From Dicyema japonicum (lineage: Eukaryota; Animalia; Dicyemida): a DNA stretch of 64,000 nucleotides. Positions 1-45,980 of the stretch are shown in pieces. The DNA is taken from NCBI GenBank assembly GCA_011109175.1, contig RDEW01000013.1:910181-974180 (forward strand), given 5' to 3'. Numbering within the stretch: the stretch's first letter is position 1; each line of letters starts with the position of its first letter. The position numbers and the translations under genes are program-made. The notes beneath the pieces are model-generated. The model saw nothing but the letters and a program-made list of their open reading frames with translations. It ran no database searches and was not told the origin of the DNA.

Positions 1-419
1 CATGAGGGGTGTCCAACGGCGTCTAAAGCTAGCTTAACAACTTCGTTCAAGGCCTGTATTTGGGAATCAACCTGCACTCTTCCAGAAGGAAAGAAGATGT
101 GAGCCAAAACAGTCGATCTGGTCTGCTTCTGCAATAATTTAAACATAATACATCGTAAGAAGCCAGCGGTTATGGAAAGAAAAATTGATCACTTCAAGAG
201 ATACTCTCATTTAAATCAGATTATCTATTTGAGAAAGTAACTGAATCATTGGAACTCGTCAGTACGCAATCCTTCAACCCCCTAAGCACTATCTGTTCAT
301 TCAAAATGTCATTAATCAAGAAAATACGATAGTAATTCCGATATTTCAAAAATTTAAAAAAAAGTTTTTTTTATAATTATAATTTTAGAAAATAAAATTT
401 GATGAAAACTACCTCTCAT

Positions 420-831
420 ATGGGTTTTCTCAAAACGGATCTAACATCAATTGAATATATGAACATCTTATTGGTTTGAGATCAGATATATAAAATGAAT
501 CCTTTTTTAATTTTTGGAGAGCATACATTTCAAAATATCCTGATATCTCAGAAAAGGCTATACGTACACTATTACTTTTCCAACGACTGAATACATCTAC
601 CAAAACAAAATATAAACTCAATGCTTCCGCTGATATGAGGACACAGTTGGCAACAATAACTCCTAACGTTACACAACTATGCTATGATAGAGTTATCTCA
701 ATGTTACATTAAATTGTCTTTGGTTATTGCGATTATAATTTAAGTAAAAATTGTAATAATTGAATTAGAAGGTTCTGCAAAAAAATTAGCCCAAAAGAGT
801 TCCGCGAGCACTTTAAGGTTGGGAACCATTG
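420..831 (+). mobile_element. Right-hand part of a Buster/Charlie-type hAT DNA transposon (degraded transposase C-terminus plus right TIR)
   Basis: Ends AAGGTTGGGAACCATTG followed by GTCTAGAC. The internal sequence closely matches 28590-28829. Remnant reads EHLIGL..., ...ADMRTQLATITPNV..., typical of the hAT dimerisation region. Confidence 0.8.
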
Positions 832-844
832 GTCTAGACGTTAG

Positions 845-1900
845 AATATACAGTTTAAGAGATCCACGGCAGTGTCTCATGATTTGAGGTAAATGAGTAA
901 TCCTACAAAACTCGAAACTTTTGGATTATAAATTGGCCCCATGGAAGGTCTAATATGCGCATGATGAAATCGCTAAAGGGTGGCGTAATCTTAGTTTAAT
1001 TCATATGGTTGAGATCTCAAGACTTGCAGATATTCGGGAGATGTGATGGACATTGAAATTATAGAATAACACACCTTAACGTTTTAGATCCTACAAGAAC
1101 AGCATAAATTACTCAGATTTATAAAATCGGCAAGGGGTTAATATCGATGGAAGTTGAAATTTAATAAACACCTCTACCATGACTGGTTCAGGTTACTGCA
1201 CAAAACCATAACCGACGCGGGGATCCCTTCAAGCTATCTAATTTAACAGCTTTCACATGTTAACAAATGGGGGGTCACTTTCCACATTTAGTCATTTAAC
1301 TAGTGACGTTAATGGTTGATTTGTTGGAAAGTTGAGCTGGAGATGTAGTCCCAGTGAACCATGAAGTAGTCCTAATACAATTCTTTCATATCAAAGTGGA
1401 CATAAACATCTTGTCCGATTCTTGATTGCCTCAGAAACATCGCAAATCATGAAACATGAGATACCTCAATGTCTGGTTTCCTAAATTGGGGAAACATGGA
1501 TAATTCTACTTTGAGAGGAAAAAGATTTCCTCTTAGAAAATCAACTTTAACGGAGTGTAGTTAACTCCATCGATGATTATAGTTTTTAAGTTTTCTAAAT
1601 TTCTTGCGAATATTTTTTTCAGTCGTTTTGTGCATACTACATACAGATTCAAATTCATCTGTGACCTTAAAGTTGATAAGCCAATACTCGTGATGTCAAT
1701 GACTCATCATAACAATTGAAAGGAATAGCTCTTTCCAGGACCAGAATAGTACATTTATCTCACGTTCTTTTGGAGTAGCAGAACTCTCGATATACGAATC
1801 CTTAAAGACTGGTCTGTGCGGGGCATTTTATTTGCTGCTTCCAAAATACGGCCTTTCAAAAATTCACAAGTTAGCTTCTATTAATAACATGAACGTTTGA
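845..1900. mobile_element. Highly degraded non-LTR retrotransposon fragments (R4-like), probably both orientations
   Basis: Weak remnants resembling the RLY..R..GGRGL region near 1110-1150; many stops. Boundaries approximate. Confidence 0.35.
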
Positions 1901-2199
1901 GAATAACTGATAATTTCCTTATTACTTCCAAGGTAGGCTGATTCAAGTTTCTCCAATTTGGGACAGCTGGGATTAAAACCCAGGCGTTTCATTATGTTAA
2001 AAAATTTGTGTTTCTAATGTCTTCTGTGACCATTGAAAATGAGACGAGAGGTTCTATCCACCATGAGGAGATTAGGAAGTTGTACAGGGGCTATTCTATA
2101 GTGGACCAGAATGGATGAGTATCCCTTGAATTAAGGAGTAGGACGTGATGGTGAAAATCGAGTTCCCCTCATTAAAGTAATTTCCACGTCTTGGGATGA

Positions 2200-2660
2200 T
2201 AAAAAATCCATCAGCAGTGAGAACAGCCAAAAGGATCTCGTTGAAGAGAAGATCCCATCGGGAGAGAGATATGATCTTTTAGTTGCCATGTAGAACATAA
2301 CATCCCAATCTGATCCACATATGTCGTCATGGAACGACTCCAGATTGCCGTAAAACATTCTTTACAAGAGAACAAGGAGCATAGAGATTACGATCGAGAT
2401 CCTGGAAGCAAGATGGAAGCTGGTTGGCCATATACTTCGTCTGGACCTAGAAACCCCCTGCAATCAGAACCATGAGCGCTACTTTATGGAAATCGTGTTT
2501 CCGTGGTCGAACAAGGACAACCGTACTAACCGTCTTAAATGAAAAACTTAGAGAAACCGGGAGGCCCTTTACAGACTACGGAATATGCCACAACAGAAAA
2601 AAATGGAAGAAGTTAATTAGTGACTTGATTTTTCGTGTGCACGTGATTTTGACATGACCT
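2200..2660 (+). mobile_element. Degraded 3' part of an RTE-like LINE
   Basis: Reads RWKLVGHILRLDLETPCN...FRGRTRTT..L, homologous to the RTE C-termini at 36694-37287 and 38885-39427. Confidence 0.7.
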
Positions 2661-2687
2661 ATAACATACTACACTGTACAATACTGT

Positions 2688-3000
2688 ACCCTACTGGCCT
2701 GGACAAGGAAGACGGAAAGCCATCAGACGGAGTAACTATCTTTCCGATAGAGGAGGGGAAACGATTAGTTCGGGGTGCAAAATGTGTGGACTCTCTGTCT
2801 TCACCAACATCATCGGGATCACGATAAGGCACTTTCCGTCGCAGAGAAAGCAGAGAGAGATAAAGAAAAGAAATATAGAGGACTCCTTAGCCGATATACC
2901 TTCCACACGATTGCTGTCGAGACAAAAGGAGCGATAAACAACAAGTCCCTGATATTCCTCAAAAACTGACGTATTGCATGATCAGAAGCCACAATGACCG
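2688..3000 (+). mobile_element. CRE-like non-LTR retrotransposon, restriction-like endonuclease remnant
   Basis: PTGLDKEDGKPSDGVTIFP...AEKAERDKEKKY...F.TIAVETKG matches the DGKRPDG...AE..K..KY...ETxG C-terminus of RLE-type elements. Homologous to 18450-19150 and 58600-58890. Confidence 0.65.
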
Positions 3001-3239
3001 CGAAACGCGATCGATAGCTGTCTGTTTAGTATCTTCAGGAAATTTCTCAGTTTTTTATAATCTCTTTTTACTGAGGAAATCAAGTTATCCAAATTAAAAA
3101 AAATAAATTTCGATGTACAGCAATAGAATAAGTGTACACGTGGAACATATCTGAACCCCTTTATTTTAGAATACCAGTTTTCTCCATACAACTTTCTTTT
3201 CGTTCATCGCGGTCGTCCGCTGTTTTCATTTTCAACCAA

Positions 3240-3505
3240 CTTATTATTATTTATTTATTTAACCCCGGATACACCGAGAAAGAAGTTAAAGTAAACAACT
3301 AATTAAGTGTAACCAGTTTCCACTTCTACAGAAACAGAGTCCATCCGGAATCAGCATAAAAGGTAAGACGTCCATTACATGCAGTTGTGGAAACCCCTCC
3401 AGTGGATTGGGGGAGAGCAAATGATCTTTTTTTGTGCCGGCCAGGCACTAGGCACCATCTAGACAGGTGGATCACATGATGCCACTCTATTAGGAAAAGA
3501 GAGAA
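3240..3505 (-). mobile_element. 5'-truncated LINE 3' end (Ingi/Vingi-like tail)
   Basis: On the minus strand ends ...CTCGGTGTATCCGGGGTTAAATAAATAA, like the tails at 34860 and 45960. Body 3340-3500 is repeated at 13395-13555. Confidence 0.55.
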
Positions 3506-3650
3506 GAAATAAACAAGGAATTTTCAACCAACTTGACCATAACATTGAGATGTCGTTCGTTTTCTTCTAAAAAAGTCCCAGTTTTATTTTAGTAGTAAAA
3601 ATTTTCCATCATGAGATTACATGGTGTCACCATTTGAAAGAGGGAGAGCA

Positions 3651-3812
3651 AAGGAATGCTTTTTAACTCATTTTTGTTGGGTGTGAGTCCTTTTAGGCGA
3701 TCCGGTTCAGCAGTGGAGTATTCATTGACAAAAAATCACTCGTCAAAGGCAGGAACTTTCAGCTAGATGTACAGCAGCGAGATTCGAACACAAAACCATT
3801 AGGATTTTCCGT
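3651..3812 (-). mobile_element. tRNA-derived SINE, degraded copy
   Basis: B-box-like GTTCGAATC and body TTTGACGAGTG...ACCGGATCGCCTAAAAGGA, shared with the copies at 6121, 29561 and 60371. Confidence 0.6.
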
Positions 3813-3814
3813 AA

Positions 3815-5830
3815 CTATGACACTGCCTCGTCCCTACAAAGAATACTCCCCAAAAGTATCCAGCGAAGTAATATCACATTCTCACCTAGATGACTACTAA
3901 TATCGGCTCTCGTTCCTGAGCTGTATAGAAGGATCGGTTGCACGAACGCATAAATAGACTTATCCTGAGATAATTTGGGGAACATAATTATCATTGCAAG
4001 GGACATCAGCATTTTTCGATTAGCCATGTCCTTGTGATCTCCAGAAGCGAGCCGAGAATTTTGACGAACCTCCACTTTTCATCAACCCGCTTAGGTATCC
4101 GTTCAATCGACGTCAGCTCAGTTTTTTTTAATTGATTTCAATGACAATCCATCACAAATATCTATGACTTTATCCTCAGCTGAATTAGGTAACTCCAAAG
4201 GCACTTGTTAGGTAACCCAATTCTTTACGAATGTCCCTCAAAGACCCGTCTTGAATGCTTCTCTTCATCCAAAATCAATAATCTTATTCAGTCTTAGTCA
4301 ATAACCTGAGAACAAGCAGTGGTTATTTCTACAAGTAAACTCCCAGAATGTACATCATTTTTTCAACTCCCAACTCCCAGAATGACTAAAAAATAGTTAT
4401 TCAATACACGAACCATTGATGGTTCCAAACGATATCACCGGTTGACCTTCCTTGGTTAAGTCCACTTTGACGGAGCGATAAATAGTTATAATAGATAAGG
4501 ATTTTTGTAGACACGTTTGTAGAATTACGGCCTCAGATAAATGTGTGTGCCTCACTTTTGGGAGTAGGAAAAAAGTCAAACGGAAAATGGTCAAATTTTA
4601 ATTTGGAAAAAAAGTCAAATTATTATTTCTTGGTCATTTTCAAATAAAATAAGATTTTAAAGACTTTATTTGTTTACAAAAAAATTTTCAAGAAAAATTT
4701 GCATTTGATTTTTTTCCGTTTTTCCTATTTTCTTCTGCTAATTTTACGAAAGATGGAAAAAAGTAAAAAAATTTAAGTCATGTTTATATTTTTGTAAAAG
4801 TCAATTTTTTTTAATTTCCAAAATTAAAATCACTCAAACCGCAACCTTGGTAAAATTGATTCTACTTTGAACTTTAAAATTTGACCTGCTAGTTGCGTAG
4901 CGTGCTTAAAAATAAAACTATTTTTACGTTGAATATTTATTTTTCTATGAAACTTATAAAATCGAATAAACGTGGATCAAAAAATTTTTTTCAATGGATA
5001 TATACTAGAAATTCCGGAACTAAATAGAAAATATACTGAAAATGTATTTTAAAAATTTCTAAAAAGAAGAAGTTTAATAACAGATCTTGAGTTTCAAAAT
5101 GCTACTGAAAGTCAACCTCATAATTATCCTTTTGACTTTCATGGAATCAGATTGAGCAAATTGACAAATGAATTTAAACTTCCGGCATATCATTACAATG
5201 AAACACCATCCCAAATTTTCTCTGAATATTTAGCACAATGCGATCCGAACTTAAACAATTATGTCCTTCTGATTCGTTTAGAAAAACAATCCGTAAGCAA
5301 CGCTCGTCTAATTGCGGTTAAAATTACATCATGGGGTTTAATTTTTGATTTTATATCGTGGTTAAACCAAATTCATTTTTTTAAAGTTTTGGGTGAAATT
5401 AAAATTGACTTTTTTCCAAAAAATATAAACATGGCTTAAAATTTTTGACTTTCCCCCATTTTTCGTACAATTAGCAGAAGAAAATGGGAAAACGAAAAAA
5501 AAGTGAACGGAAAAAAAGTCAAATGCAATTTTTTTTGAATTTTTTTGTTAAAAATAAAGTCTTTAAAGTCTTATTTTACTTGAAAATAATTAAGAAATGA
5601 TGATTTGATTTTTTTTCCTTTTGACTTTTTTCTACTTCCCTCACTTTTACCAGGTTTTTGTAGACAGTAATATATATTTCCCGTTGAGATTTCAAATAGA
5701 CAGTGAATCTTAAATATTTCGGTAAACATAATTTTTTGGCATTCTTCACAAATATTGTAAAGCCAGCCACTCGATTATTATTCGAACTCCAAAAATTTAT
5801 GAATCCGCGAACAGTTTATTAAGTAAGCAG
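3815..5830 (-). mobile_element. Degraded RTE-like LINE RT region, split by a MULE insertion
   Basis: Minus-strand remnants YAFVQPILLYSSGT, GRSTGDIVWNHQW and CLQKPGK. The LQKPGKSE segment joins across the 4560-5639 insertion. Confidence 0.65.
4560..5639. mobile_element. Non-autonomous Mutator-like element (MULE) with long TIRs
   Basis: Imperfect inverted repeats of about 270-300 bp (4560-~4830 versus ~5385-5639), starting GGGAGTAGGAAAAAAGTCAAA and ending TTTGACTTTTTTCTACTTCC. 9-bp direct duplication CTCACTTTT at 4551-4559 and 5640-5648. Internal ORF remnant FKLPAYHYNETPSQIF resembles a MULE transposase. Confidence 0.85.
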
Positions 5831-7219: not shown

Positions 7220-7320
7220 GAGATAAATGCATATTAATCATATTCTCATGAATGGAGATAATGCATATTAATCATATTCTCATGAATGGAGATAAATGCA
7301 TATTGATCTTATTCTCATTA
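7220..7320. repeat. Short tandem repeat, about 34-bp unit x3
   Basis: GAGATAAATGCATATTAATCATATTCTCATGAATG repeated three times. Confidence 0.85.
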
Positions 7321-7952: not shown

Positions 7953-9631
7953 ATGGCAATGGCTTGTTTCCTTTTGTTTTTTATAATAAACTTCGGTAAT
8001 TTTTTTTGTAACTAGATATTGGATTTGGATTTTCAATGGGGGTATCCACATGAAATAATAAAATTTTAGTTTCCTAACCCAAATTCTGCTCAAAGTAAAT
8101 TTTGTTAAATACCTTTAGATCAAAATGGAGGAATCGGCGGTATTTCAATGAATATTAAATTTTAAAGGTCCTAACATCCATAATGGCCCACGTAAACTTA
8201 ATTATTTTATTTTTAGAATCCAGCGGAGGATCCAGTGGTATTTCAATGAATTTTAAATTTTAAAGGTCCTAACATCCATAATGGCCCACGTAAACTTTAT
8301 TATTTTATTTTTAGAATCCAGCGGAGGATCCAGTGGTATTTCAATGAATTTTACATTTTAAAGGTCCTAACATCCATAATGGCCCACGTAAACTTAATTA
8401 TTTTATTTTTAGAATCCAGCGGAGGATCCAGTGGTATTTCATTGAATTTTAAATTTTAAAGGTGCTAACATCCATAATGGCCCACGTAAACTTAATTATT
8501 TTATTTTTAGAATCCAGCGGAGGATCCAGTGGTATTTCAATGAATTTTAAATTTTAAAGGTCCTAACATCCATAATGGCCCACGTAAACTTAATTATTTT
8601 ATTTTTAGAATCCAACGGAGGATCCAGTGGTATTTCAATGAATTTTAAATTTTAAAGGTGCTAACATCCAAAATGGCCCACGTAAACTTAATTATTTTAT
8701 TTTTAGAATCCAGCGGAGGATCCAGTGGTATTTCAGTGAATATTAAATTTTAAAGGTGCTAACATCCAAAATAACCCACGTAAACTTAATTATATTATTT
8801 TTAGATTCCAGCGAAGGATCCATTGGTACTTCAATAAATATAAATTTTTAGGAGGATTTACGGTATTTCCGCATCAAACAATAAATATTTAGACTACTGG
8901 AACTACCCAGGCTAGAAGCAGCCGAACCACCCAACGTAAATTAATTAAATAATCTTTTTAGGAACCAGCAGAACATCCGGTTGTATTCTATGAATATTAA
9001 ATTTTAGGACAATATACGGTATTAAAGCATCAAAAAATAAATATTTAGACTGCAATTACCCAAGGTACTACCAACCAAGCCACCCAATGTAAACTTAATT
9101 AAATAATTTTTAGCTGCAGAATACAGTGGTATTTCTATGCATATTACATTTCAAAGGTAGTACTTACATACCTCCCCCGCGTAAGCATAATTAAATAATT
9201 TTTAGCTCCAGGATACGGTGGTATTTCCATGCATATTAAATTTTAAAGGTGGTCATGGGTCAGGTCCTTCAAGTAAGCCTAATTCAATAATTTTTAGATT
9301 ATGGTGTAACAGCAAGTAGTTTTTTATGAATTTTATTTTTTAGAATCTAAAAATCCATTTTCATTTATGCGTTCTGATTTATCAGGTTTTATTATTATTT
9401 TTTTAATTCCACTAAATTATAAGCCTGTAATCATTAGATCCTGATAATGATGAAAAAAATCCAAAAAATTGGAAATCTCTGATTTTTAGTAATTTTGTGT
9501 CCAAATTAGATAATTTTAATTATGGTTTAGTATCTTGTATCATCGGTGTGGTGGTTCTACCAGTCTACTTGAATTACAGAAAATTTAATAAAGAAACAAA
9601 AAAATCAGAATCGAAACCTGGAAATAAGTAA
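7953..9631 (+). CDS. Micro-exon gene 1: predicted 294-aa type-I membrane protein with Gly/Ser/Asn/Pro repeats (30 exons)
   Basis: Manual GT-AG splicing gives one uninterrupted 885-nt ORF. Exons: 7953-7995, 8016-8041, 8070-8094, 8119-8139, then 7x(24-nt + 21-nt) from 8168 with a 98-bp period, then 11,43,18,11,40,15,24,15,24,18,42 nt, last exon 9438-9631. Protein: MAMACFLLFFIINFDIGFG-FSMGFPNPNSAQNQNGGIG-(GPNIHNGPQSSGGSS)x7 with variants-GGFTTTGTTQARSSRTTQ...PKNWKSLIFSNFVSKLDNFNYGLVSCIIGVVVLPVYLNYRKFNKETKKSESKPGNK*. AATAAA at 9637-9642. Confidence 0.88.
8140..8825 (+). repeat. 98-bp tandem repeat x7 (28-nt intron + 24-nt exon + 25-nt intron + 21-nt exon)
   Basis: Units start at exact 98-bp spacing (24-nt exons at 8168, 8266, 8364, 8462, 8560, 8658, 8756) with no indels. 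Confidence 0.95.
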
Positions 9632-13394: not shown

Positions 13395-13555
13395 CATCCG
13401 GAATCAGCATCAAAAGGTAAAAGAAATCCATTACATGCAGTTGTGGATACCTTCCAGTGGAGTGGGGGAGAGCAAAGGATCCTTTTTCGTGCCAGTCTGA
13501 CCTTAGGCGTCACCTAGACAGGTGGATCACATGAGCCGTTCTAAGAGGAAGGGAA
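13395..13555 (-). repeat. Dispersed repeat, second copy of 3340-3500 (LINE 3' region)
   Basis: CATCCGGAATCAGCAT...CATTACATGCAGTTGTGGA...CTAGACAGGTGGATCACATGA is shared between the two copies. Confidence 0.7.
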
Positions 13556-13995: not shown

Positions 13996-16900
13996 ATGAA
14001 AGTGGGCATCTACATAATTATATTCTTGATAAACATGGGTAATGTTGAGATAAGACTTAGAAATCGGATATGGATTTCCTTCAAATGTATTTAGAGAAAT
14101 AATAAATGTATAGATTAATGGAATGGGTGGTCATGGAATGCTACAGAATGCACAAAGTATAACTTAAAGATAATCTTTAGATGGATTTGGAAATGGTAGA
14201 ATTTTGAGAGAATTATTTTTTAGGAGGATCAACGGTAATTTAAAAAATAAAAACATAGACGAGTACACATGTCCAAACTACTCCACCTAACGCTGGACAA
14301 AGTAAATCTTAAACATAATTTATAGATGGGGGAGGAAATGGTAGAATTATTAGAGAATTATTTTTAGGAGGATCAACGGTAATTTAAAAAATAAAAACAT
14401 AGACGAGTACACATGGCCAAACTACTCCAACTAACGCTGGACAAAGTAAATCTTAAACATAATTTATAGATGGGGGAGGGAATGGTAGAATTTTTAGAGA
14501 ATTATTTTTTAGGAGGATCAACGGTAATTTAAAAAATAAAACATAGACGAGTACACATGGCCAAACTACTCCAACTAACGCTGGACAAAGTATATCTTAA
14601 ACATAATTTATAGATGGGGGAGGAAATGGTAGAATTATTAAAAAATTATTTTTTAGGAGGATCAACGGTAATTTAAAAAATAAAAACATAGACGAGTACA
14701 CATGGCCAAACTACTCCCCCTAACTCTGGACAAAGTATATCTTAAAACATAATTCTTAGATGGGAGGAAATGGTAGAATTTTAGAGAATTATTTTTTAGG
14801 AGGATCAACGGTAATTTAAAAATAAAAACATAGACGAGTACACATGCCAAACTACTCCTTAACGCTGGACAAAGTATATTTTAAAATAATTTATAGATGG
14901 AGGAAATGGTAGAATTTGAAGAATTATTTTTTAGGAGGATCAACGGTAATTTAAAAATAAAAAACATAGACGAGTACATGGCCAAACTACTCCCTAACTC
15001 TGGACAAAGTAATATCTTAAAATAATTCTTAGATGGATTTGGAAATGGTAGAATTTTAGAAATTATTTTTTAGAGGATCAACGGTAATTTTAAAAAAAAA
15101 ACATAGACGAGTACGCATGGCCAAAAACTACTCCCTTTAACTCTGGACAAGTATATCTTAAAAATAATTTTAGATGGATTTGGAAATGGTAGAATTTTGA
15201 AGAATTATTTTTTAGGAGGATCAACGGTAATTTAAAAAATAAAAATATAGACGAGTACTCAGGGCCAATCTACTTCCTTTAACTCTGGACAAAGTATATC
15301 TTAAAATTAATTCTTAGATGGGGACATGGTAGAATTTTGAAAAATTATTTTTTAGGAGGATCAACGGTAATTTAAAAAAATAAACATAGACGAGTACGCA
15401 TGGCCAAACTACTCCTTTAACTCTGGACAAAGTATATTTAAAAATAATTTTTAGATGGAGGAAATGGTAGAATTTTGAGAATTATCTTTTAGGAGGATCA
15501 ACGGTAATTTAAAATAAAAACATAGACGAGTACGCAGGCCAAACTACTCCCTTTAACTCTGGACAAAGTATATTAAAAATAATTCTTAGATGGATTTGGA
15601 AATGGTAGAATTTTGGAGAATTATTTTTTAGGAGGATCAACGGTAATTTAAAAAAAAAACATAGACGAGTACGCAGGGCCAAACTACTCCCTTTAACTCT
15701 GGACAAAGTATATTTAAAAATAATTCTTAGATGGATTTGGAAATGGTAGAATTTTGAAAATTAATTTTTTAGGAGGATCAACGGTAATTTAAAAAATAAA
15801 ACATAGACGAGTACGCAGGGCCAAACTACTCCCTTTAACTCTGGACAAAGTATATTTAAAAATAATTCTTAGATGGATTTGGAAATGGTAGAATTTTGAA
15901 AAATTATTTTTTAGGAGGATCAACGGTAATTTAAAAATAAAAAACGAGTACGAGCAGGCCAAACTACTCCCTTTAACTCTGGACAAAGTATATTTAAAAA
16001 AATTCTTAGATGGATTTGGAAATGGTAGAATTTTGAAAAATTATTTTTTAGGAGGATCAACGGTAATTTAAAAATAAAAACATAGACGAGTACTCAGGGC
16101 CAATCTACTCCCTTTAACACTGGACAAAGTATATCTTAAAAATAAATCTTAGATCCATTTGTACATGGTAGAATTTTGAAAGAATTATTTTTTAGGAGGA
16201 TCAACGGTAATTTAAAAAATAAAACATAGACGAGTACTCAGGGCCAATCTACTTCGTTTAACTCTGGACAAAGTATATCTTAAAAATAATTTTAGATGAA
16301 TTTGGAAATGGTAGAATTTTGAAAGAATTATTTTTTAGAAGGATCAACGGTAATTTAAAAAATAAAAATAGACGAGTACGCAGGGCCAAACTACTCCTTT
16401 AACTCTGCACAAAGTATATTTTAAAAATAATTCTTAGATCAATTTGGACATGGTAGAATTTTGATAAAATTATCTTTTAGTAGAATCAACGGTAATTTAA
16501 AATAAACACATAGACGAGTACGCAAGGCCAAACTACTCCCTTTAACTCTGCACACAGTATATTTAAAAAATTCTTAGATCCATTTGGACATGGTAGAATT
16601 TTGAAAAATTATTTTTTAGGAGATCAACGGTAATTTAAAAAATAAAAAATAGACGAGTACGCAGGCCAAACTACTCCCTTTAACTCTGCACAGTATATTT
16701 AAAAATAATTTTTAGATCCATTTGGACATGGTAGAATTTTGAAAATTATTTTTAGGAGGATCAACGGTAATTTAAAAAATAAAAATAGACGAGTACGCAG
16801 GCCAAACTACTCCCTTTAACTCTGCAAAAGTATATTTAAAAATAATTCTTAGATCCATTCGGACTGGTAGAATTTTGAAAAATTATCTTTTAGGAGAATC

Positions 16901-18303
16901 AACGGTAATTTAAAAAATAAATAGACGAGTACGCATGGCCAAACTACTCCCTTTAACTCTGGACAAAGTATATTTAAAAATATTCTTAGATGGATTTGAA
17001 TGGTAGAATTTTAAAAATTATTTTTTAGGAGGATCAACGGTAATTTAAAAAATAAAACATAGACGAGTACTCAGGGCCAAACTACTCCCTTTAACACTGG
17101 ACAAAGTATATCTTAAAAATAATTTTAGATATTTGGAATGGTAGAATTTTGAGAAATTATTTTTTAGGAGGATCAACGGTAATTTAAAAAATAAAAACAT
17201 AGACGAGTACTCAGGGCCAAACAACTCCTTTAACTCTGGACAAAGTATACTTAAAATAATTTTAGATCCATTTGGACAATGGTAGAATTTTTGAGAAAAT
17301 TATTTTTAGAAGGATCAACGGTAATTTAAAAAATAAAAACATAGACGAGTACTCAGGGCCAAACTCTTCTCTTTAACTCTGCACAAAGTATATCTTAAAA
17401 ATAATTTTTAGATGGATTTGGACTTGGTAGAATTTTTGAGATAATTATTTTTTAGGAGGATCAACGGTAATTTAAAAAATAAAAAAATAGACAAGTACTC
17501 ATGACCAAACTACTCTTTTTTACTCTGGACAAAGTATAATTTAAAAATTATTTTTAGATGGATTTGGAAATGGTACTTTTTTGAAATAATTATTTTTAGG
17601 TGGAACAACGGTTATTTAAAAAATAAAAACATAGACGAGTAAACATGGCCAAACTCCTCCGCCAAACGCTGCATCAAGTATTCATTAGATTTTATTTTTA
17701 GATGAAGGAGGACATGGTATAATTTTTTCAACAATTAATTTTAGATAGTATCACTGTATTTCCTTCTTATAATTATAATAAATATTTAGACTGTCTTATA
17801 TTCATCAACTGGAACTCATCATACGACCAAAGTTTTTATTTTATAACATAAATTAGATTCTGTTTCAACATCATGTAATATTTTAAATTTTAAATTCTTT
17901 TTTTAGACGGATCTTCTGTATTTTTTTATTTTTCATTTATTTAGACTAATGGAAAATTTTCAGATTTTTATAACCCTTTTGCCCAAAGTAGATTTTTTCA
18001 AATTATTTATTAGATTCAGCTAAGGGATCATCTAGTATTCTGAATTAAAATTTTTTAGGTCCATCGATTAATCTAGATTCTACTCTTTCTGGTTTATTTA
18101 TTATTTTTTAATTTTTCTAAATTCAATGTTGTTTATCAATAGTTACTCCATATAATGGATTCATTCCACAAAATTGGAAAGAATATTTTTATAGTAATCT
18201 TTATCAACTAAACATAGATCACTTCAATTCTGTTTTGGTTCTTTTTATTTTATGTACCCTGGTTTTGACTATCTATCGAAACAATACCCGAAGTAAACGA
18301 TAG
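13996..18303 (+). CDS. Micro-exon gene 2: mucin-like type-I membrane protein, about 87 exons, about 730 aa if in frame; paralog of gene 1. Frame-breaking 1-2 nt deletions occur in several repeat units.
   Basis: Exons 13996-14038 (43 nt), 14061-14086 (26), 14114-14156 (43), then 25 units of 15+11+43-nt exons encoding NGFGN-GGST-TSTQGQTTPFNSGQ and variants, eight divergent micro-exons, last exon 18143-18303. N-terminus MKVGIYIIIFLINMEIGYG-FPSN. C-terminus IPQNWKEYFYSNLYQLNIDHFNSVLVLFILCTLVLTIYRNNTRSKR*. Confidence 0.8.
14157..17716 (+). repeat. About 141-bp tandem repeat x25 (three micro-exons plus three 24-29 nt introns per unit)
   Basis: GATCAACGGTAAT or a close variant recurs 25 times between about 14227 and about 17603. 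Each unit has three GT...AG AT-rich segments. Confidence 0.95.
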
Positions 18304-18449: not shown

Positions 18450-19150
18450 TTTTAAATCTAATCTGTTTTAATAGCCACGCTATTTCTTCAGCGATGGCTA
18501 TAGAGATACACTCTCGAAGTCACCTCGGTGTTTTGTTGAACGTGTTCCCATCATCGTTAATTGGTTCCCTTCTGGAATGGGATATCAATCAGTCTCGATC
18601 TACCTATGCCAGCCTCATTCATGCTTTTGTAGATCTGTTGTAAACTGCGGAGAACTTCACCAGCTTTCTTGCCGTCTCAGCACAAGCCGGTTCACGAGTC
18701 ATGCAGCCATCAACGGGGTTGTCAAACGCTCTCATGAGGCAACTGGATTCCCGTCGTCTCTGGTACCGGTGGGCCTAAAACGTAGAGATTGAAGGCGCCC
18801 AGACGGGGTAACTGTCTTTCCCTTTTATCGGAGGAGATGCTTGATTTGAGATGGAGCCTGTACCGACACCTTTTCCCAGTCGAGACTTACTGGTTCCGCG
18901 TTGAAAGCTGGGGAAGTTGCTCTGACTTTCGAGCATTCTAAGATAAAAAATACGACATCCTCTTTACAAGATTCTATTTACAGCCCGTTGTCGTCAAGAT
19001 GAGCGGAGTCTCCGGGCCCAAAACGGTCTCTTTTCTAAGACTGCTTGGATCAATTATTTCGAAAGTTAGCAATAGCGTCGGGAAACCGAATGCTTGCCTC
19101 AAAGGATTTCTCTGGCAGTTATCAGGGGTAATAGCCATTTCATCTTATCA
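18450..19150 (+). mobile_element. CRE-like non-LTR retrotransposon C-terminal remnant
   Basis: H.LSC..S..RFTSHAAINGVVKR...P.GL.R.D..RPDGVTVFPF..GRCLI*DGACTDTF: CCHC finger plus RLE motif, with stops. Confidence 0.75.
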
Positions 19151-36693: not shown

Positions 36694-37985
36694 TTAGTTA
36701 AGAGCTCTTTCGCGTGGCCCTAAAAGGGGTTCGCTTGAGCCATGTTTTGCAGCCATCCTCCTCGCCCACGCCATCTTGTTCCTGACCCTCATTCGAACAT
36801 CATCCAGATCGTCCGGTGTCATCAATTTACGACTGTTTTGTTTGTAGTCATCTTTTAAGCAGGTTGGAAGTGTGTTTCTTGGTCTGCCTCGAAATCCGCG
36901 ACTTCTGGCGTAGTAGAAATATTCTTCCATTATTCTGTTACTTGGCGTAGTCGGGTCCAGTCTGAGGATATGTCCAAATAGTCGCCATCTCGATAAAATA
37001 ACATCGGTGCTGAGTGGTCTGGATTTACATCGTGAATATAGATTTTCATTTGAGATTTTTCTCGGCCAAAAAATTCCAATCAACATGCGGAGTTGGCTCC
37101 TGTGAAAAGTATCTAGCTTCTCTAAATCAATTTTAGAACATGCCCATGTTCCAGTATTGTATAGCAAAATTGGTTTAACAAACGTGTCGTATAGTCTGAC
37201 ACGAAGTTTCTGTGATACATCTTTTTTCCTTATCCAAATTAGGTACATTTTTTGAAATATATGGTAGCCAGCATTTTCCTTCGACAAATATCCTCAGCAT
37301 CACCTAGCAGTGAGCCGAGTTTTTTGGTATGTCTCCAGCACTCATCGTTCTTTGATTCTGCTCGTTCGACTCGTGTATATTCAGTTTTTTTAATGTTTAT
37401 GCGCAAATCCCAATTCTTAAAAATACGTTCGGCTTGAAGTAAAATTTGGTCAAGTATTTCTTGGTCGGTAGACACAAAGTCTACATCATCCGGATAAATT
37501 AACTCTGTTATGTCCCAGTATTTAGGACCCATGACATTTCTCAATTCCTTGAGCGCAGCTTCGAGGTAAACAATAAATATAATTGGGGACAAAGAATCTC
37601 CTTGTGGAGTGCCCATGTTGGTACTGAAACACTTCGAATGCTTTGTTCCTATTCTCACGGATAGGTCAGTTTCGGAAAGTAATAAACTTATTAGTCTCAG
37701 GCAGTCCTCGTCAAGCAGTTCCTTTAGAACAATCATGAGTTTTTCTCTATTGATGCTGTTAAAAGCCTTCGTTAGATCAATTCCTAGGATGTAGATTACT
37801 TTCGTGTATTTTTGACATATTGATGTGAGCCATCGATGACTCCATACAATATCTGAGGTTGATCTTCCACTTCTAGACCCACTTTGACTTAGGGAAAGGT
37901 ATTTTTCCACTGGCTCTCGTATACGGTTAAGCACTATGATCGATAAGGTTTTCCTGCATCCTTTGATATTGGAACGGACAAACAA
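36694..37985 (-). mobile_element. 5'-truncated RTE-like LINE, RT domain, one frameshift
   Basis: ORFs 37239-37985 and 36694-37287: GIDLTKAFNSINR, GTPQGDSLSP, YPDDVD, KKLGSLLGD, RWRLFGHILR, FRGRPR. Confidence 0.92.
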
Positions 37986-38435
37986 ATCGATGTCCTCCTG
38001 TAAGAGGTCCTCTAAATATCATTTTAACGACATTGATACAAGAAAGCGGGGATAATTACTGCTATCGCTATTTATGACCACGTGGCCCACTTCAAGAACG
38101 GTGAAAATTTAATGTATCCTGCAAAGTATCACAAATATAAACACTTGTGAGTTGCAAGCAAGAGTTAATGTTGCATACATCAGATTGTCCACTACATATG
38201 TAACGAACATGCCATATATGCATGAATGTAGACTAATATAATCAGATTTGAAAACCTTGATTAATTACATCAACAATCAAAGCGGATAGAACATCAACTC
38301 AGAAAATTCTTATAGCCCACTAAAACACCCACGTTTAATACCATTAATTATTTAAATATTTAAATATTTTTTATCAAAAACAACTAACAATTTTTATTAA
38401 TGGTTTTATTAATGAAAATGGTCAATAATGGAAGT

Positions 38436-39460
38436 TGGATGAATTGTCGGTTAGGATAATCAGACTACTACTTGCGAATACAAGACTATCTTTGAGGACA
38501 GAAGGAGCAACTTCCCACAATTTCAAAACAACGATTGGGACACCCCAGGGTGATTCCCTCTCCCCTTTACTATTCACCATATACCTTGAATCTGCACTCC
38601 GCGACCTCCGTAAATTCTATATAGGAGACATAGAAGAGACATCTTATGCGGATGATGTGGATTTCGTATCACGGGACGTGACCGCACTCTAACACCTACT
38701 AGAAAATGCACCTGCGGAGCTTGAGAAATGGTTTCTCAGCGTAAATGTAAACAAAACTGAAATTACGGAAATCAAAAGAGAAGACGATATTACTCATGAA
38801 AGATGGAGACGTACTAATAAGCTCGGCTCTCTACTAGGAGACGCTGAAGATGTACTAAGGAGGAAAACACTGGCAAATGCGGCAATGGCTAAACTGAAGA
38901 AAGGATGGCTAAGAGCCAAAGGACTTGGAATTGACATCAGATGCAGGCTTTACAACGCGTTTGTGAAACCGATCCTACTGTACAACGCTGGGACATGGGG
39001 AAGTTCCTTCAACGAACTATTGAAACTGGATTCGTTCCATAGAAGGCAACTAAGAAGCTTACTCGGAATGGAGTGGCCACGTAGAATATCAACCACTGGT
39101 ATCTACAACAAGTGTATGTGTTCGTACATCAGCAAGGATGTGATAGATGCCCGGTGGAGGCTATTTGGGCATGTACTAAGAATGAACCCGGACGCACCCG
39201 CTAACAAAGCGATGGAAGATTACTTTGACAGTTGCGACAAACCCTTCCGCGGACGACCTAGATCGACACTTCCGACTGCCTTAAACAAAGACTTAAATCG
39301 TGTGAGAAAAAATCTAAAGACGGGGGACGACCTGGACGAATTGAGATCACTCGCATTCGACAGAGGAAGATGGAAAAGACTAACTATAAATATTGTTTCT
39401 TTGAGTGTTGCACATGCGGGGCTATAATCATTATGGCTTTCGTGAAAGTGCCTTAATAAT
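38436..39460 (+). mobile_element. 5'-truncated RTE-like LINE with (TAA)n tail and 12-bp TSD
   Basis: GTPQGDSLSP, YADDVD, RWRLFGHVLR; in-frame stops. AATAATGGAAGT flanks both ends (38424-38435 and 39461-39472). Confidence 0.92.
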
Positions 39461-40159
39461 AATAATGGAAGTAGGTCTGCCCTCTTCTATTTTCGCCGCA
39501 CGTCTTACCGTCGCGGAAATCACTTCATTCTTCTGCGGAATATTTTTCATAATGTAATTTTCACTAGATGATTTGGTCAGGGAGATAGAAGCGGAACCCT
39601 GTAATGTACTATTGGAAGATGGATTTTGTCAGCACAAGCAGATGTTCTCCCTTGGGTTCCTTTCTTGGATTAATTAGTTATGACTGTTTGTTCTAGGTTT
39701 ACTAAAGATTGTATGCCTGGGCTGTTACTTTCAAAAGATTGAGAGTTGTCTCAGAGAGAAACAAGAGAGAAATAAGACTTAGAGCACCTTGCTCGTCTCA
39801 GAGAGAGATAAGACTTAGAGTGACCTTGCTCTTGAAGTATAAGAGGATGACGTTGTTATTAGTCTCGGGTTGCACATGCCTTTTCATAGCGAAAGTCCAT
39901 TAATAATAAGTCAAGCCATATTTTATGGTCTGGCACTTCCCACACCGGTTCCACGCACACGTGTAATCCAATTCCTATATTCAAATTTATTTATTTAACT
40001 CCAAGACCACCAAGAAAGATAGGTCAAAACTAACTGATTAGGTGATCCCAGCCTCCAACAACATCCGAACTTTTCTTCGCCTGGTCTTCTAATGACCCAA
40101 CTGCATTCCGGAAGCGCCTTCTCTTCCACGTGCAAATGAATTCAATCGGCGTGCACTTT

Positions 40160-41985
40160 TTTTATAACCGACCGAAATTACTCTCGGGTCCAACCTCAGG
40201 ACGTATCCAAAAAGTCTCCAACGAGAGCTAATGATCTCGTGACTTAATGGTGTACAGTCACACTTATTGTACAGTCCATTCCAGTTATGCTTCTTAGATG
40301 ATTCCTGTGAAACGAGTCTAGCTTCTCCAATTCCTCTTTTAAGGTGACCCAGGTCCCAGAGTTGTATAGTAGGATTGGTTTGATAAAGGTGTCGTATAAC
40401 ATTATCCTTTGTTTTACGTTATTCCTTTTCCGTTTTAGCCATAGGTCTTTCAGCCCGTGTAATGCCGCGTTTACCATAGTTTTTCTCCGTATGATATCTT
40501 CAATATCTCCTAATTGGGAGCCAAATTTCTTTGTATGTCTACATTTCTCTTCGAGTAGGTTATTCATTCGTCCTATTTCTGTCCGTTCTGTTTTTTTCTG
40601 TTCACGGTGAGAAACCCTTTCCCAATTATATCTGGTGCTTTTTCTAGTATATGTTCCAGGAGTTTTTTGTCTTCAGAGATTAGGTCGACATCATCAGCAT
40701 AAATCACTTCTTCTATTTTTTCATTGGTATAATGGTCTCAGTTCCCTCATAGCGGCCTCCAAGTATATTGTGAATAGTAACGGAGAGAGGGAGTCTCCTT
40801 GAGGAGTGCCTGTGTTTGTTTCAAATTTTCTTGAGTAGGTTTTTCCAACTCTCACAAGGAGTTCTGTTTTAAATATAAGAATTTGGAACATTCTTAGACT
40901 CGATTCGTCAATAAACCCTTCCAGCACTGTCATCAATTTGTTCCTGTTAACTTTTGATAGATCTATTCCCCAGAATTTGGGTGACATTGCAATATCTTTG
41001 ATGTGTTGCACATCTTCATCTGTGACTCCAGACTGCATCAGCTGTTGATTTCCCTTCTCTGAACCCACTTTGACTTCGGGTAGTCATAGGCGGGTCCTTT
41101 TATTCGTTCCAATACAATGTTAGCTAAGACTTTTTGCAGAGAATTTGTTTCCGTTGCGTGTCCATTTCGTGTATTCTCATTATTATTGTTTGTAGTGTTG
41201 TTATGTTTCTTATGTTTGATACCATGTTTCAATAGCCATTCTGTGATCGCTGACAGTTGTTGAACCTTCGTATGAGCGTGCGTTTTTAAGAGAGCGTTTG
41301 TCATTGATCCGGCATATAATGTAATCAATTTGGTTGTATATAGGGACTAGTTTTCCATCTGGGTTTCTTCGTTCGCCCTTCCAAGTGGTTATGTGGCATG
41401 CACGATGAGAGAATGCGGTGTTGCACAAGAACAGTTTGTTTGCCGTGCAGAAATGGCCAAGTATGGTCCCAGGCAAGTTTCTTTTCCCACGTCCGTGTCT
41501 TCCCATGAAGGTATCTTTTGAGTTTTTTTTGTTCCGATTTTCGCATTCAGATCGCAGCAATGAATATAAGTGAGGACGACTCGTATTCATTATACGTTTT
41601 TGATAATGCTGAGTAAAATTCATCCAGCTCAGCCGGGTTTTTTGCAACTCTTCCACAGTGTGGCGCATATACATTTATAATTGTTAGTGTATTTTTAGGG
41701 GAACACTGGTTGTTCAGATAGATCTGTATTACGCAGATCCTGTCATTCACCCGCCAAGTGCGACTGATGTCGGCTGATAGTTTTCTGTTAATGGCGAATC
41801 CGAGACCATAGTGTTTTGAGTCACTGGGTAGACATATTAGTCGATATTTTCCATGGTTTTCATCGAGATAGTACGTAATTTTCGTCTCTTGTATACAGCC
41901 AATGGTAACGTTATATCTTTCTAGGTCATCACAGAGTATTTCTTGACTGAGGCTTAGATATTCCTCTAGCATTGAAGGTAAGAAG
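40160..41985 (-). mobile_element. Degraded RTE-like LINE with APE endonuclease and RT, internally deleted
   Basis: GCIQETK, YGLGFA, INVYAP, YNQIDYI, SDH, GTPQGDSLSP, YADDVD across several frames. Confidence 0.9.
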
Positions 41986-42162
41986 CTTTAGGGCATGCAT
42001 ATTCTTTTTATCTTCTGCTTTCTAGACATTTTCCTTAAAGTTAATGCATGAAAATTTACTTTGAAAATAAACCAGCACAAGGTGACACAATTAAATATTT
42101 ATTAAATATTAAATTTATAATGTATTTTTTTCTAAAATATTTAATAATAAAATTTCCGATAA

Positions 42163-42956
42163 TCACATAATAATAATTATTATTATTAATACTATTATTA
42201 TTATTATTATTATAATCACAGTAAATATTATTTTTGTAATGAGAAGTACAATATTCGCATAAAATCTATCTTCTGAATAATTCATTTCAATTCGATTATC
42301 TGTTAAATGCGTATTTTCTAAAGCTGGCTTACGAACTGCTCCAAAAATAGACTTTCCACATTCTTTCGCTGAAAATTATTATAATAATTACCATTCCCAA
42401 CAAAATCCCTGACTGTATCAGTTCTGAAAAACTGAGCTCTAAAATACGATATTTCCACAAAGACATCTTCCGGGAAGTAAACGAACAGTTTGTCACATTT
42501 ATAGTAGTCATCGATTTCTGATGTCATGCTTACTTCCACACAAGTTTGTATTTTGTCAGACTAAATATGCATTTATAGTACATATTGTTATCTAAAGCTG
42601 ATAAATTTCAAACTTTCTTCCATCGGATCTGGCGGTGACCCCAAAATCGACTAGTCCGCTATCCATGATGATTTGAAGGGGATTCGAATTAATATACTCT
42701 TTTTTAATTCTCACGTTTTTGAATAAATTCGATTGGAGCTGATTTTATAAATTATTTACTTTATCATCCTCCTTCCAGAAAACAGTGATATTCCCACTGA
42801 TAGCCACGTGAGTTGTTTCTTGGTGATAGATGATCCAGGTTGGTGCTGGTTTAGTATGGTATTTAAATGAAAAGTAATAACGAGGAATTTGAGTATTTAT
42901 AGTAATTATGTTGATAACTAAGATGAATTATTGAAAATACAAATTATGTGTATCAT
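42163..42956 (-). pseudogene. LAMP-like (lysosome-associated membrane glycoprotein fold) membrane-protein gene, apparently disrupted
   Basis: ATG at 42956 and tiny GT-AG introns. Spliced product contains YYKCDKLFVYFPEDVFVEISYFRAQFF...FVGN|AKECG, resembling the LAMP C-terminal Y-x-C...Q-x-F...A-x-E-C motif, then a hydrophobic Ile-rich end. There is an in-frame TAG near 42592 and one splice-phase mismatch. Confidence 0.5.
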
Positions 42957-43049
42957 GTATGTTGAAATTGTTTATGCAAATTATTTTATTTAATAAAGAT
43001 TTTTTATATTTAATACAATATTATTTAAAAATTTATTTAAATAAATAAA

Positions 43050-45980
43050 AAACCCTTTCAATCTTTTTGGTTCTCCCCACCGTCCGGTGTCCTTTCATCT
43101 CCTGTGTCTTCGACCCTGTCTGGTGTCCCCATTTATCCAGACTTTTGATTCTTCTATGTGGAGACGTCGAAACCAATCCTGGTCCATGGATAGGTTTTAC
43201 AATTATACAACTGAATACGAATGGGGTCAGGAAGTAAATCTTTGAACTCCGGGCACTTCTCCGCGAAAATGAGGCTGACCTCGCTTTAATACAGGAGTCC
43301 AAGCTATCTCCCTCCATACCAACACCCTCTTTTCCCGGATACACAGTGATCCGTAAAGATCGTCAGGGAAAACGCGGAGGAGGACTACTTACTATTATAA
43401 AGAACGATTTTCTTTTATGGATACAACTCAACAAACCTCAGAGCTTCTTGGCTCCGACAAGACTTTGGAGCAGATTACTGTCAAAATGGAGTTATTCCCG
43501 TTCTTTTGGATCCATTTAGCTAATTTATATATTCCTCCACAAGGATCGTGTCCGTCATCTTACACCCCTGATTTATCACGCATTTCAACGTTGAAAAATC
43601 TACTGTTATGTGGGGATCTTAATGCACGACATCCAGTTTGGCTCACTTCCCAATTATTTGATAACCGAGGAGAACTCATTGCAAATTATCTTCCTGACCT
43701 GATTATACTGAACAACCCTAACTCACATACGAGAACCCCATTAAGGATGACTGATAGCTGCACATCCCCCGACTTAACACTATGCTCACCTTCTCTGGCT
43801 GGACTCATTTCCTGGAACGTCTTTTACGGCTTCTCCAGTGACCACAATCCAATCCTTCTAAAATTGAGAGGTCTTCGACGATACAGGAGACGGCGGCGAA
43901 ATCAAAAAGATTCAAGGATTATACGAAGGTTGACTGGTCTGGTTTCAGTAACCTTGTGGATAAATTCTTGGCCGGAGATTATCCTCCCAATACGCTCTAT
44001 TGACGAGGCCGCAGAAATTATCAGCGCTGCCATTCAGAAAGCTGACCATATTTTTATTCCTATATCGTCATACAAGAAGTTTATTCCTACCCTCAGCTCT
44101 TATACAATAAGTCTTATAAAACAAAGAGACCGGCTGAAGAGATGCCATCTGTTGGACATGAAGTCTTTGACAGCCCTCAGACAACTGAATAAAAGATCTG
44201 TCAGAGCATAAAAGAACACAAGGACAAGAGATGGCAGCATCTAGTTAACCACCTCGACAGGAAAAGTACATCCCGACATCTTCTGGAAAACTCTTAAACA
44301 AGTCAAGTCGGAGCTGGATGATGCAGACGGAACCGGAAAGTCTTCTCCTGAACACTTATGCCACCTACATCCTAACATCCTTATGAAACATTACGCTGGA
44401 ATTAGCTTCAAACCATTCTCGAAACACCTGGACATTAAGGTGCGTGCCCATAAACCGAAGAAGGAACCTTATCACGAACTATTCACAGATGACCAAGTCT
44501 TGGATGTGATCACCAGATTAAAGAGCTCACGGGCGTGCGGGCCTGACAAAGTATCTTCTATTCACCTAAAACACCTAAGCCACTACGCAATTGGCTACCT
44601 CACGCATATATACAATCTGTCCATTAACTATAATATTATTCCTAAGATTTGGAAGAATTCTATCATCAGACCGATATTGAAGGCTGGGAAACCAGAGACA
44701 GAACCTGCATCCTACAGGCCTATTTCCGTTACCAGCACACTGTCAAAAATTATGGAGAAACTTGTATTATCAGTCATTATTCCGTATCTTCCGCGTCCTA
44801 TATTTCAACATGGTTTCCTCCGCGGTAGGTCCACCGCTACATACTTGGCAACTTTATCGCAGTTCATTGCCGACGGTTTTAACACCCATCCTCCGCCTCA
44901 CAAACGCACAATCTTGGTTTCTATTGACATCAACAAAGCCTTTGACACTGTTTCGAGGAAAATCTTGGTTGGAAAAATATTTTCTACTAATATTCGTCCG
45001 AATGTGAAATTATGGCTGGCCAACTTTTTGTCTGGAAGACGTGGAAGAGTAGTCAGTGGTGATCTCAGATCTAGATCACGATTACTACCGAACGGGGTAC
45101 CCCAGGGGTCTCCACTTTCACCAATTCTATTCAACCTTTTCCTACACGACCTACCTAATGATGGAGACGAAGATTCCCTGTTATTATCCTACGCAGACGA
45201 CGTAGTCATTGCAATACGGAACCGCTCGACGCAAGTCGCATCCCTTAAAACTCAGACAAAATTGAACATTCTCCACGATTGGATTGTGGCAATCGACTTA
45301 ACGATTTCTGCAACCAAGTCTATCTGTTCCACATTCACGTCGGACCGTCGTTCCAAGGATGAACCGAGTCTTTATTGGTCCCACTAGGATTCCAGTGACA
45401 AAGTCCCCCATTGTCCTTGGAGTCAAGTACGACAGCCTTCTCAAATTCAACTCCCACGCAACAGACATGATCACCAGGGGCCTCCAGAAAGTTAACGTTA
45501 TACGCGCCCTTGTTCGGAGGACCACGAGGAACATGGACTTTTCCGTTTCTACACCTACCAACAAACAATCGCGCCTGCCATTGAGTATGCCTCCGTTGCA
45601 TGGAGATTCGGGCTATCGGAGTCTTTGGTCCAAAGAATCAACTCGATATACCGGAAAACAATCAGTATGCTTTCCCACGTAATGGATCAACAGTCGACTC
45701 ACTACTCATGGAAGCTAAGATCCGTAGTCGTGGCTCCGGATTTTTTGGCGTCTGTGAGGAAGATGGAAATCCGCTTCGCCTGATCCTTTCCATGGCAAGA
45801 GAAAACCGATTGGATAAGAAATTCCCCTCCCCGATCGGATTCCTCTGCAAGACCGAGAGAAGGCTCTTCCGGAAAGTAATGGGGACGATGGAGATCACAG
45901 ACGTCGAATGGCACAATGATTGCAAGGACTGGGATCACCTAACTGTATGACTCTTTTGTCTTTCTTTCTCGGTGTTCCAA
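43050..45980 (+). mobile_element. Near full-length Ingi/Vingi-like LINE (2A-like peptide, APE endonuclease, RT; no ORF1 seen), frameshifted
   Basis: LLILLCGDVETNPGP, IIQLNTNG, LIQESKL, LLCGDLNARH, SSDHNPI, SYRPIS, QHGFL, DINKAFDTV, GVPQGSPLSP, YADD in ORFs 43417-44211 and 44383-45387. Confidence 0.9.

Follow-up and report, generated by a model that had tools for sequence, protein, structure and literature searches.

A tandem array of tiny exons and introns in Dicyema japonicum, best read as a predicted surface-protein gene

The window analysed here is a 64,000-nucleotide stretch of genomic DNA from Dicyema japonicum, a dicyemid, and its subject is a 4.3-kb segment (from position 13996) that looks like satellite DNA. 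The best reading of its sequence is a predicted surface-protein gene of 88 exons and 87 introns, built around a tandem array of 25 units. We favour this reading because diverged units keep the exon layout, because the pattern opens into a transmembrane (TM) tail and because a neighbouring paralog is open without any correction. We consider it likely that the gene is functional and single-copy and encodes a type I membrane surface protein of ~722 amino acids with an expanded stalk, the frameshifts found in the centre of the array being mostly errors.

Results

Exon-intron architecture

The 88 exons comprise three 5' exons, 25 array triplets, two diverged triplets and four tail exons (Table 1). 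Tandem Repeats Finder reports a period of 144 bp in 24.9 copies (14152-17660). Within a unit, exon A (mode 15 nt) is followed by an intron (mode 27 nt), exon B (11 nt), an intron of 23-24 nt, exon C (43 nt) and a third intron of 23-24 nt, with phase 1 after A, phase 0 after B and phase 1 after C. All 87 introns start with GT and 86 of them end with AG; unit 13 is without its second acceptor AG. Intron lengths range from 18 to 51 nt, 83 of the 87 falling between 20 and 29 nt, and GC content is 8% in intron interiors and 43% in exons. Intron density reaches 20.2 per kb over the gene and 40 per kb when counted on the coding sequence (CDS), and the mean exon has 25 nt. Only 30 of the 88 exons are multiples of three, B and C being symmetric only as a pair.

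The original prediction for this DNA had described about 87 exons in 4.3 kb, formed by a 25-fold triplet of about 141 bp encoding 23 amino acids, at about 20 introns per kb. The architecture, the 25-copy array, the 15/11/43 layout and the intron density are all recovered, and the predicted peptide matches the translated units; however, the count is 88 exons and 87 introns, the triplets number 27 in all when the diverged units 26 and 27 are included, and the period is 144 bp. The statement that exons are shorter than their flanking introns was too general, since it applies to 55 of the 86 internal exons, the 43-nt exons being excepted. A signal-peptide exon and a TM-encoding last exon had also been proposed: both ends are apparent by hydropathy, but the signal peptide is probably encoded by exons 1 and 2 together. 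The exon 1 peptide reaches a maximal hydropathy of 3.0 over nine residues, and a signal-peptidase cut is predicted, by the -3/-1 rule, at a probable site after residue 19, past the conserved GxG. Illumina contigs cover positions 14032-14205 without a gap. At the other end, units 26-27 have lost their similarity to the array and kept its exon layout, and the last exon reaches a hydropathy of 2.0 in a 19-residue window and 2.9 in a 15-residue window.

Some intron lengths deserve mention. The A-B introns at 16025-16052 and 16593-16619 are 27 nt long in the assembly and 28 nt in Illumina contigs; the actual intron thus probably measures 28 nt, a length not divisible by three. Both remaining intron types of the unit (24 nt) contain an in-frame stop. 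The last introns of the gene (18194-18217, 24 nt) and of its paralog (9489-9509, 21 nt) are multiples of three and stop-free, and in both paralogs this intron could be retained or even coding, which would place eight or seven additional residues, respectively, before the TM helix.

Table 1. Coordinates of the gene, its parts and the two other genes discussed (window positions unless stated otherwise)
Feature	Position	Strand	Description
Whole gene model	13996-18303	+	4,308 bp; 88 exons, 87 introns
Exon 1	13996..14038	+	43 nt; start codon, signal-peptide hydrophobic core; 43 nt in paralog too
Exon 2	14061..14086	+	26 nt; phase 1 to 0; xIGxGF motif
Exon 3	14114..14156	+	43 nt; diverged C-type exon, phase 0 to 1
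Array of 25 units	14181..17701	+	exons A 15, B 11, C 43 nt; introns ~28/~24/~24 nt; 23 amino acids per unit
Diverged units 26-27	17702..17987	+	exons 15/11/42 (43 with Illumina base) and 18/11/43 nt
Two tail exons	18014..18091	+	21 and 33 nt; followed by the 51-nt intron
Juxtamembrane exon	18143..18193	+	51 nt; NWK motif, common to paralog
Last exon	18218..18303	+	~18-residue hydrophobic helix, short basic tail, stop
Paralog	7953..9631	+	31 exons; 30 introns, one of them 52 nt and the others 20-30 nt long
DNA polymerase epsilon gene	L043 ~200-4200; contig C35 near 1,024-1,028 kb	-	exon match, E 1e-25

The intron pattern belongs to a single locus and strand

A generic intron finder that used none of the unit motifs called 84 introns on the forward strand, all identical to those of the model, and six on the reverse strand; its rules were written after these introns had been seen, and it therefore tests the parse and yields no independent p-value. 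When units were shuffled preserving dinucleotides, three intron-like segments arose in 16 of 3000 (0.5%), which argues against a chance resemblance of AT-rich spacers to introns in a non-coding minisatellite. Such a minisatellite would be in keeping with the tandem repetition, the missing dN/dS (nonsynonymous-to-synonymous rate ratio) signal, a gene model drawn from genomic DNA and the lack of a protein homolog match to short tail queries. However, the pattern runs on both sides into non-repetitive exons, joining a signal peptide to a TM helix, and it is strand-specific, restricted to one locus and mirrored by the open paralog. We thus regard a minisatellite as highly improbable, and the paralog brings it close to refutation.

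The core of the unit occurs 24 times in the genome, always inside this array, which rules out the case, foreseen with the original prediction, of a unit spread genome-wide without the flanking exons. The gene tail, including the TM exon, is present in a single copy in the genome, and in the 264 kb of contig scanned only this gene and its neighbouring paralog exceed eight intron candidates per kb. From units 26-27 through the tail, the frame is open to the TM helix, the basic tail and the stop, given one Illumina-supported base (X). The 55 array exons of intact length contain no in-frame stop, a weak result as about two were expected.

A neighbouring paralog is open without correction

The paralog (Table 1) keeps an open frame of 287 amino acids across its 30 introns, with no correction. 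Amplification here concerned another module, a pair of 21+24 nt present seven times, and the paralog also carries two 11+43/40-nt modules; the introns of its repeat are perfectly regular (25 and 28 nt). Common to both genes are the exon sizes 43 and 26 nt, the latter with the xIGxGF motif and the same downstream intron, the 11+43-nt module, the NWK exon of 51 nt and the TM exon. Moreover, the 51-nt intron, the sole long one in the array gene, is homologous to the 52-nt intron of the paralog, and the phase-0 intron of the 11+43-nt module is similar in the two genes (z of 4.6 against shuffles, the best of 19 compared). Pattern searches for paralogs returned none beyond these two window genes: five extra exon-2 matches read as chance, and one further match to the NWK pattern (L026) has three mismatches. 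A 34-bp tandem repeat of 2.9 copies lies upstream of the paralog, at 7220-7318.

Growth of the array

The distance between units rises from 0.054 for neighbours to 0.133 for units 20 apart (Mantel rho 0.49, p 0.0002), the most diverged units are found at the array edges, and neighbouring blocks carry common variants. The gradient, the diverged edges and the confinement of the unit to one locus support the expansion by unequal crossing-over that had been predicted. In this process, each crossing-over between units would add 23 amino acids and three introns, and the centre would be homogenised while the edges diverge. All modules begin and end in phase 1, so that the duplication of a unit keeps the frame; the family may have been built from phase-1-to-phase-1 modules, either a lone exon of 3n nucleotides or the 11+43-nt pair with its phase-0 intron. 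Because the latter module is also found in the paralog, we infer that three existing introns were multiplied and that no new intron positions arose. The mass intron gain by duplication that had been proposed thus stands as far as introns were multiplied, but not as the creation of new positions.

Between units, mean distances are larger for exons (0.108) than for intron interiors (0.067). The same is true of exon synonymous sites taken alone (proportion of synonymous differences, pS, 0.16-0.24, compared to 0.067), and the tiny introns are perhaps under constraint along most of their sequence, or else homogenised faster.

Frameshifts in the array and assembly quality

The original prediction had overlooked that the reading frame is closed as assembled: 22 triplet exons are off-length, the first stop falls at codon 147, and all three exons have 15, 11 and 43 nt in only 12 of the 25 units. 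Indels in the array consist of 84 deletions and 10 insertions. They number 0-1 per unit in units 1-4 and 23-25 and up to 7 in the centre, which is rich in deletions of 1-4 nt. The D. japonicum assembly (67.5 Mb, 377 scaffolds) merges Illumina (Platanus) and PacBio RS II (Falcon) data (PMC6736024), and the available part of its methods mentions no polishing step (PMC6736024).

We compared the stretch with contigs from four Illumina genomic runs of one sample. These contigs contain bases extra to the assembly even in unique DNA. In all four runs, exon C of unit 26 has 43 nt instead of the 42 of the assembly (one base gained at 17820), as has exon C of unit 10 in one run, and an allele found only in unit 20 has an exon A of 15 nt where the assembly has 14. 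Among the Illumina exon indels listed, each restores the canonical length and none breaks an exon. The start codon, both gene ends, the TM exon and all splice sites outside the array are intact in the Illumina contigs. Finally, the share of sampled 31-mers of the stretch that is present in the deepest run is 0.31, against an expectation of 0.91 for genuine array indels and of 0.49-0.55 for indels that are all errors. Given the deletion bias, the central clustering, the lengths restored by Illumina and the low word share, most of the central frameshifts are probably consensus errors of a PacBio-derived stretch.

Alternatively, a gene of the same origin may have become a pseudogene or null allele in this copy, some of the frameshifts or the lost acceptor of unit 13 being real and the array drifting as a minisatellite. 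The off-length exons and the early stop would be expected of it, as would two further observations. First, array indels, at 1.6 per 100 nt in exons and 3.5 in introns, exceed the gap rate of the unique flanks, in which assembly and Illumina differ by 11 gap letters in ~1,640 nt. Second, nonsynonymous and synonymous differences between units (pN and pS) are about equal, 0.24 and 0.24 in exon A and 0.15 and 0.16 in exon C (dN/dS being uninformative within the array). On the other hand, the parts of the gene outside the array are intact in the Illumina contigs, the listed exon indels all go towards the canonical length, indels are half as frequent in exons as in introns, and the Illumina word share is low. 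A decayed copy is, to our judgement, unlikely.

Several of these results nevertheless weigh against a functional gene with mostly erroneous frameshifts. The word share of 0.31 lies below both models, so that other causes, such as unlisted differences or contig simplification, also feed into it. Only 3 of the 22 off-length exons are contradicted by Illumina, the other 19 not being individually resolved, and the array indel rate is higher than that of the flanks. The near equality of pN and pS leaves no purifying signal on the repeat peptide, and the gene model is drawn from genomic DNA. Moreover, no homolog or family match was obtained with the TM exon, or with the last two exons plus the in-frame intron, as queries, which are too short to judge full-length kin.

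At 15225-15288, the Illumina contigs contain unit variants that are absent from the assembly, some of them at depths below single copy, a hint that alleles differ in the make-up of the array.

Predicted protein

The expected CDS of 2,169 nt would encode 722 amino acids, in the order signal peptide, stalk of 27 23-residue repeats rich in Gly, Thr, Ser, Asn and Gln, conserved juxtamembrane part, one TM helix and basic tail. Intact units consist of 24% G, 21% T, 13% S, 12% N, 11% Q, 6% F and 5% P; they are nearly uncharged, and Cys and N-glycosylation sequons are absent. Judged from composition, the stalk is probably disordered, O-glycosylated and mucin-like, and its location at the surface is likewise a prediction. 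The mucin-like stalk of the original prediction agrees with the 34% of S+T, but less with 5% P, 24% G and 23% N+Q, and composition is its only basis; a self-associating or adhesive ectodomain rich in Gly, Asn, Gln and Phe is equally compatible.

Predicted splicing of the array

For introns of 21-29 nt, the usual size here, intron definition is the most likely mode of recognition, and it would permit the inclusion of exons of 11-15 nt. The block of 28+11+24 nt formed by exon B and its two introns is probably too small for two simultaneous spliceosomes, and introns 11 nt apart are probably removed one after another. In Caenorhabditis elegans, microexons between very short introns escape dependence on PRP-40, which fits intron definition for short introns (PMC8378409). 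By analogy, dicyemid introns, shorter still than those of C. elegans, would make micro-exons cheap.

Could the array be chiefly a splice-variation device? If A, B+C or entire units were skipped in frame, as in schistosome micro-exon genes (MEGs) or SmPoMuc, this would be compatible with a functional surface-protein gene and would only give it another main function. All three kinds of skip keep the frame, exons vary more than intron interiors, as they do in SmPoMuc and silk genes (PMC2576457), and the parasite is host-facing. However, B and C are asymmetric and neither can be skipped alone, near-identical units would yield little new sequence, and short introns favour intron definition and hence, by analogy, retention over skipping (PMC8378409). 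We therefore give little credence to splice variation as the main function and retain the expanded stalk as the preferred reading. A broader proposal combines the two: all 87 introns would be spliced at or near minimal packing, in-frame skipping and allelic copy-number change would diversify the coat, and no other member would be as large in what would be an unannotated class of satellite-like coat genes spread across the genome. We put this forward tentatively, as a possibility that we rather doubt.

Surroundings of the gene

Very high-copy dispersed repeats flank the gene at ~13450-13500 and 18830-19000, where contig depth is ~100-1000x single copy. Further away, at 36694-45950, translations reveal several broken open reading frames (ORFs) of reverse transcriptase/endonuclease of the long interspersed nuclear element (LINE) type, on both strands.

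Discussion

The array gene suggests protein-coding sequence within the 49% of the Dicyema genome classed as 'repeat'. In the published pipeline, frequent repeats were masked ahead of transcript mapping, and 5,012 gene models resulted (PMC6736024); owing to this masking, surface genes of this kind may be absent from those models. The two genes of the window are concrete candidate molecules for the interface between the parasite and its octopus host, in whose kidney it lives. The locus is also a natural substrate for the study of a minimal splicing architecture, in which the order of intron removal, retention and skipping can be followed at the size limit.

Ultra-short introns are themselves typical of the lineage. 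Dicyemid introns average ~26 nt, with a signal reduced to GTa..AG (PMC6543705, PMC13644364, and PMC2222250 on D. acuticephalum), and those of the array gene resemble dicyemid and myxobolid ones in their 20-30 nt, their GTa..AG ends and their AT-richness (PMC13644364, PMC6543705, PMC2222250). A control gene ~100 kb away, encoding the DNA polymerase epsilon catalytic subunit (Table 1), likewise has AT-rich GT..AG introns of 20-27 nt. It is the number of introns that stands out: the genome averages 6.2 introns per 1,155-nt CDS, or ~5.4 per kb of CDS (PMC6736024), and the array gene lies about sevenfold above this average in a lineage known for compaction. A limited literature search found no paper on dicyemid mucins or micro-exon genes.

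The nearest parallel in a parasite is SmPoMuc of Schistosoma mansoni, which has a signal peptide and a Ser/Thr-rich stalk encoded by a unit of one exon and its flanking intron, in up to 20 tandem copies (PMC2576457). The two systems share the exon-plus-intron repeat, introns that are more homogenised than exons and a host-facing parasite protein. In the array gene, too, the protein repeat coincides with the genomic repeat, predicted introns included (23 amino acids and three introns in 144 bp), and the units evolve in concert, again with their introns. In contrast, the 1-kb unit of SmPoMuc contains a single symmetric 27-bp exon, and SmPoMuc forms a multigene family homogenised across loci, with no edge gradient, whereas the array gene has three exons, two of them asymmetric, and three introns in 144 bp, is locus-specific, shows an edge gradient and ends in a TM anchor. 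It thus differs from the SmPoMuc family proper in unit architecture, and no homolog of its tail was found with the short tail queries.

Schistosome MEGs have up to 75% of their CDS in very small, mostly symmetric exons, introns of 0.1-5 kb and 10-20 exons, and exon skipping has been shown for them (PMC4350168, PMC4015677, bioRxiv 2023.06.21.545858). With these and with the myxozoan Tb-MEG1 (cited in PMC7923790), the array gene shares many tiny exons and a host-facing product. The likeness to MEGs extends to a signal peptide, a secreted or membrane-anchored product (here indicated by the hydrophobic N-terminus and C-terminal helix in hydropathy plots), lineage specificity and invisibility to ORF finders. 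However, the array gene has 36% of its CDS in exons of at most 36 nt (21% in symmetric ones), introns of ~24 nt and 88 exons; its micro-exon share falls short of that of MEGs at 36 nt and reaches it under a 51-nt definition. Membership of the schistosome-type MEGs was therefore rejected on symmetric exons, micro-exon share and long introns.

PMC2576457 also describes exon-plus-intron repeats under concerted evolution in two single genes, Coccidioides SOWgp and a modular spider silk gene (Hayashi and Lewis 2000), with unequal crossing-over and a centre more conserved than the edges in SOWgp, a pattern that the array gene shares. The proteins are unrelated to ours, and exons of 11-15 nt between introns of 24-28 nt are not described for them there. 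Genes repeated as exon plus intron are thus already known; what is new is that micro-exons and micro-introns occur together, with three of each in a unit.

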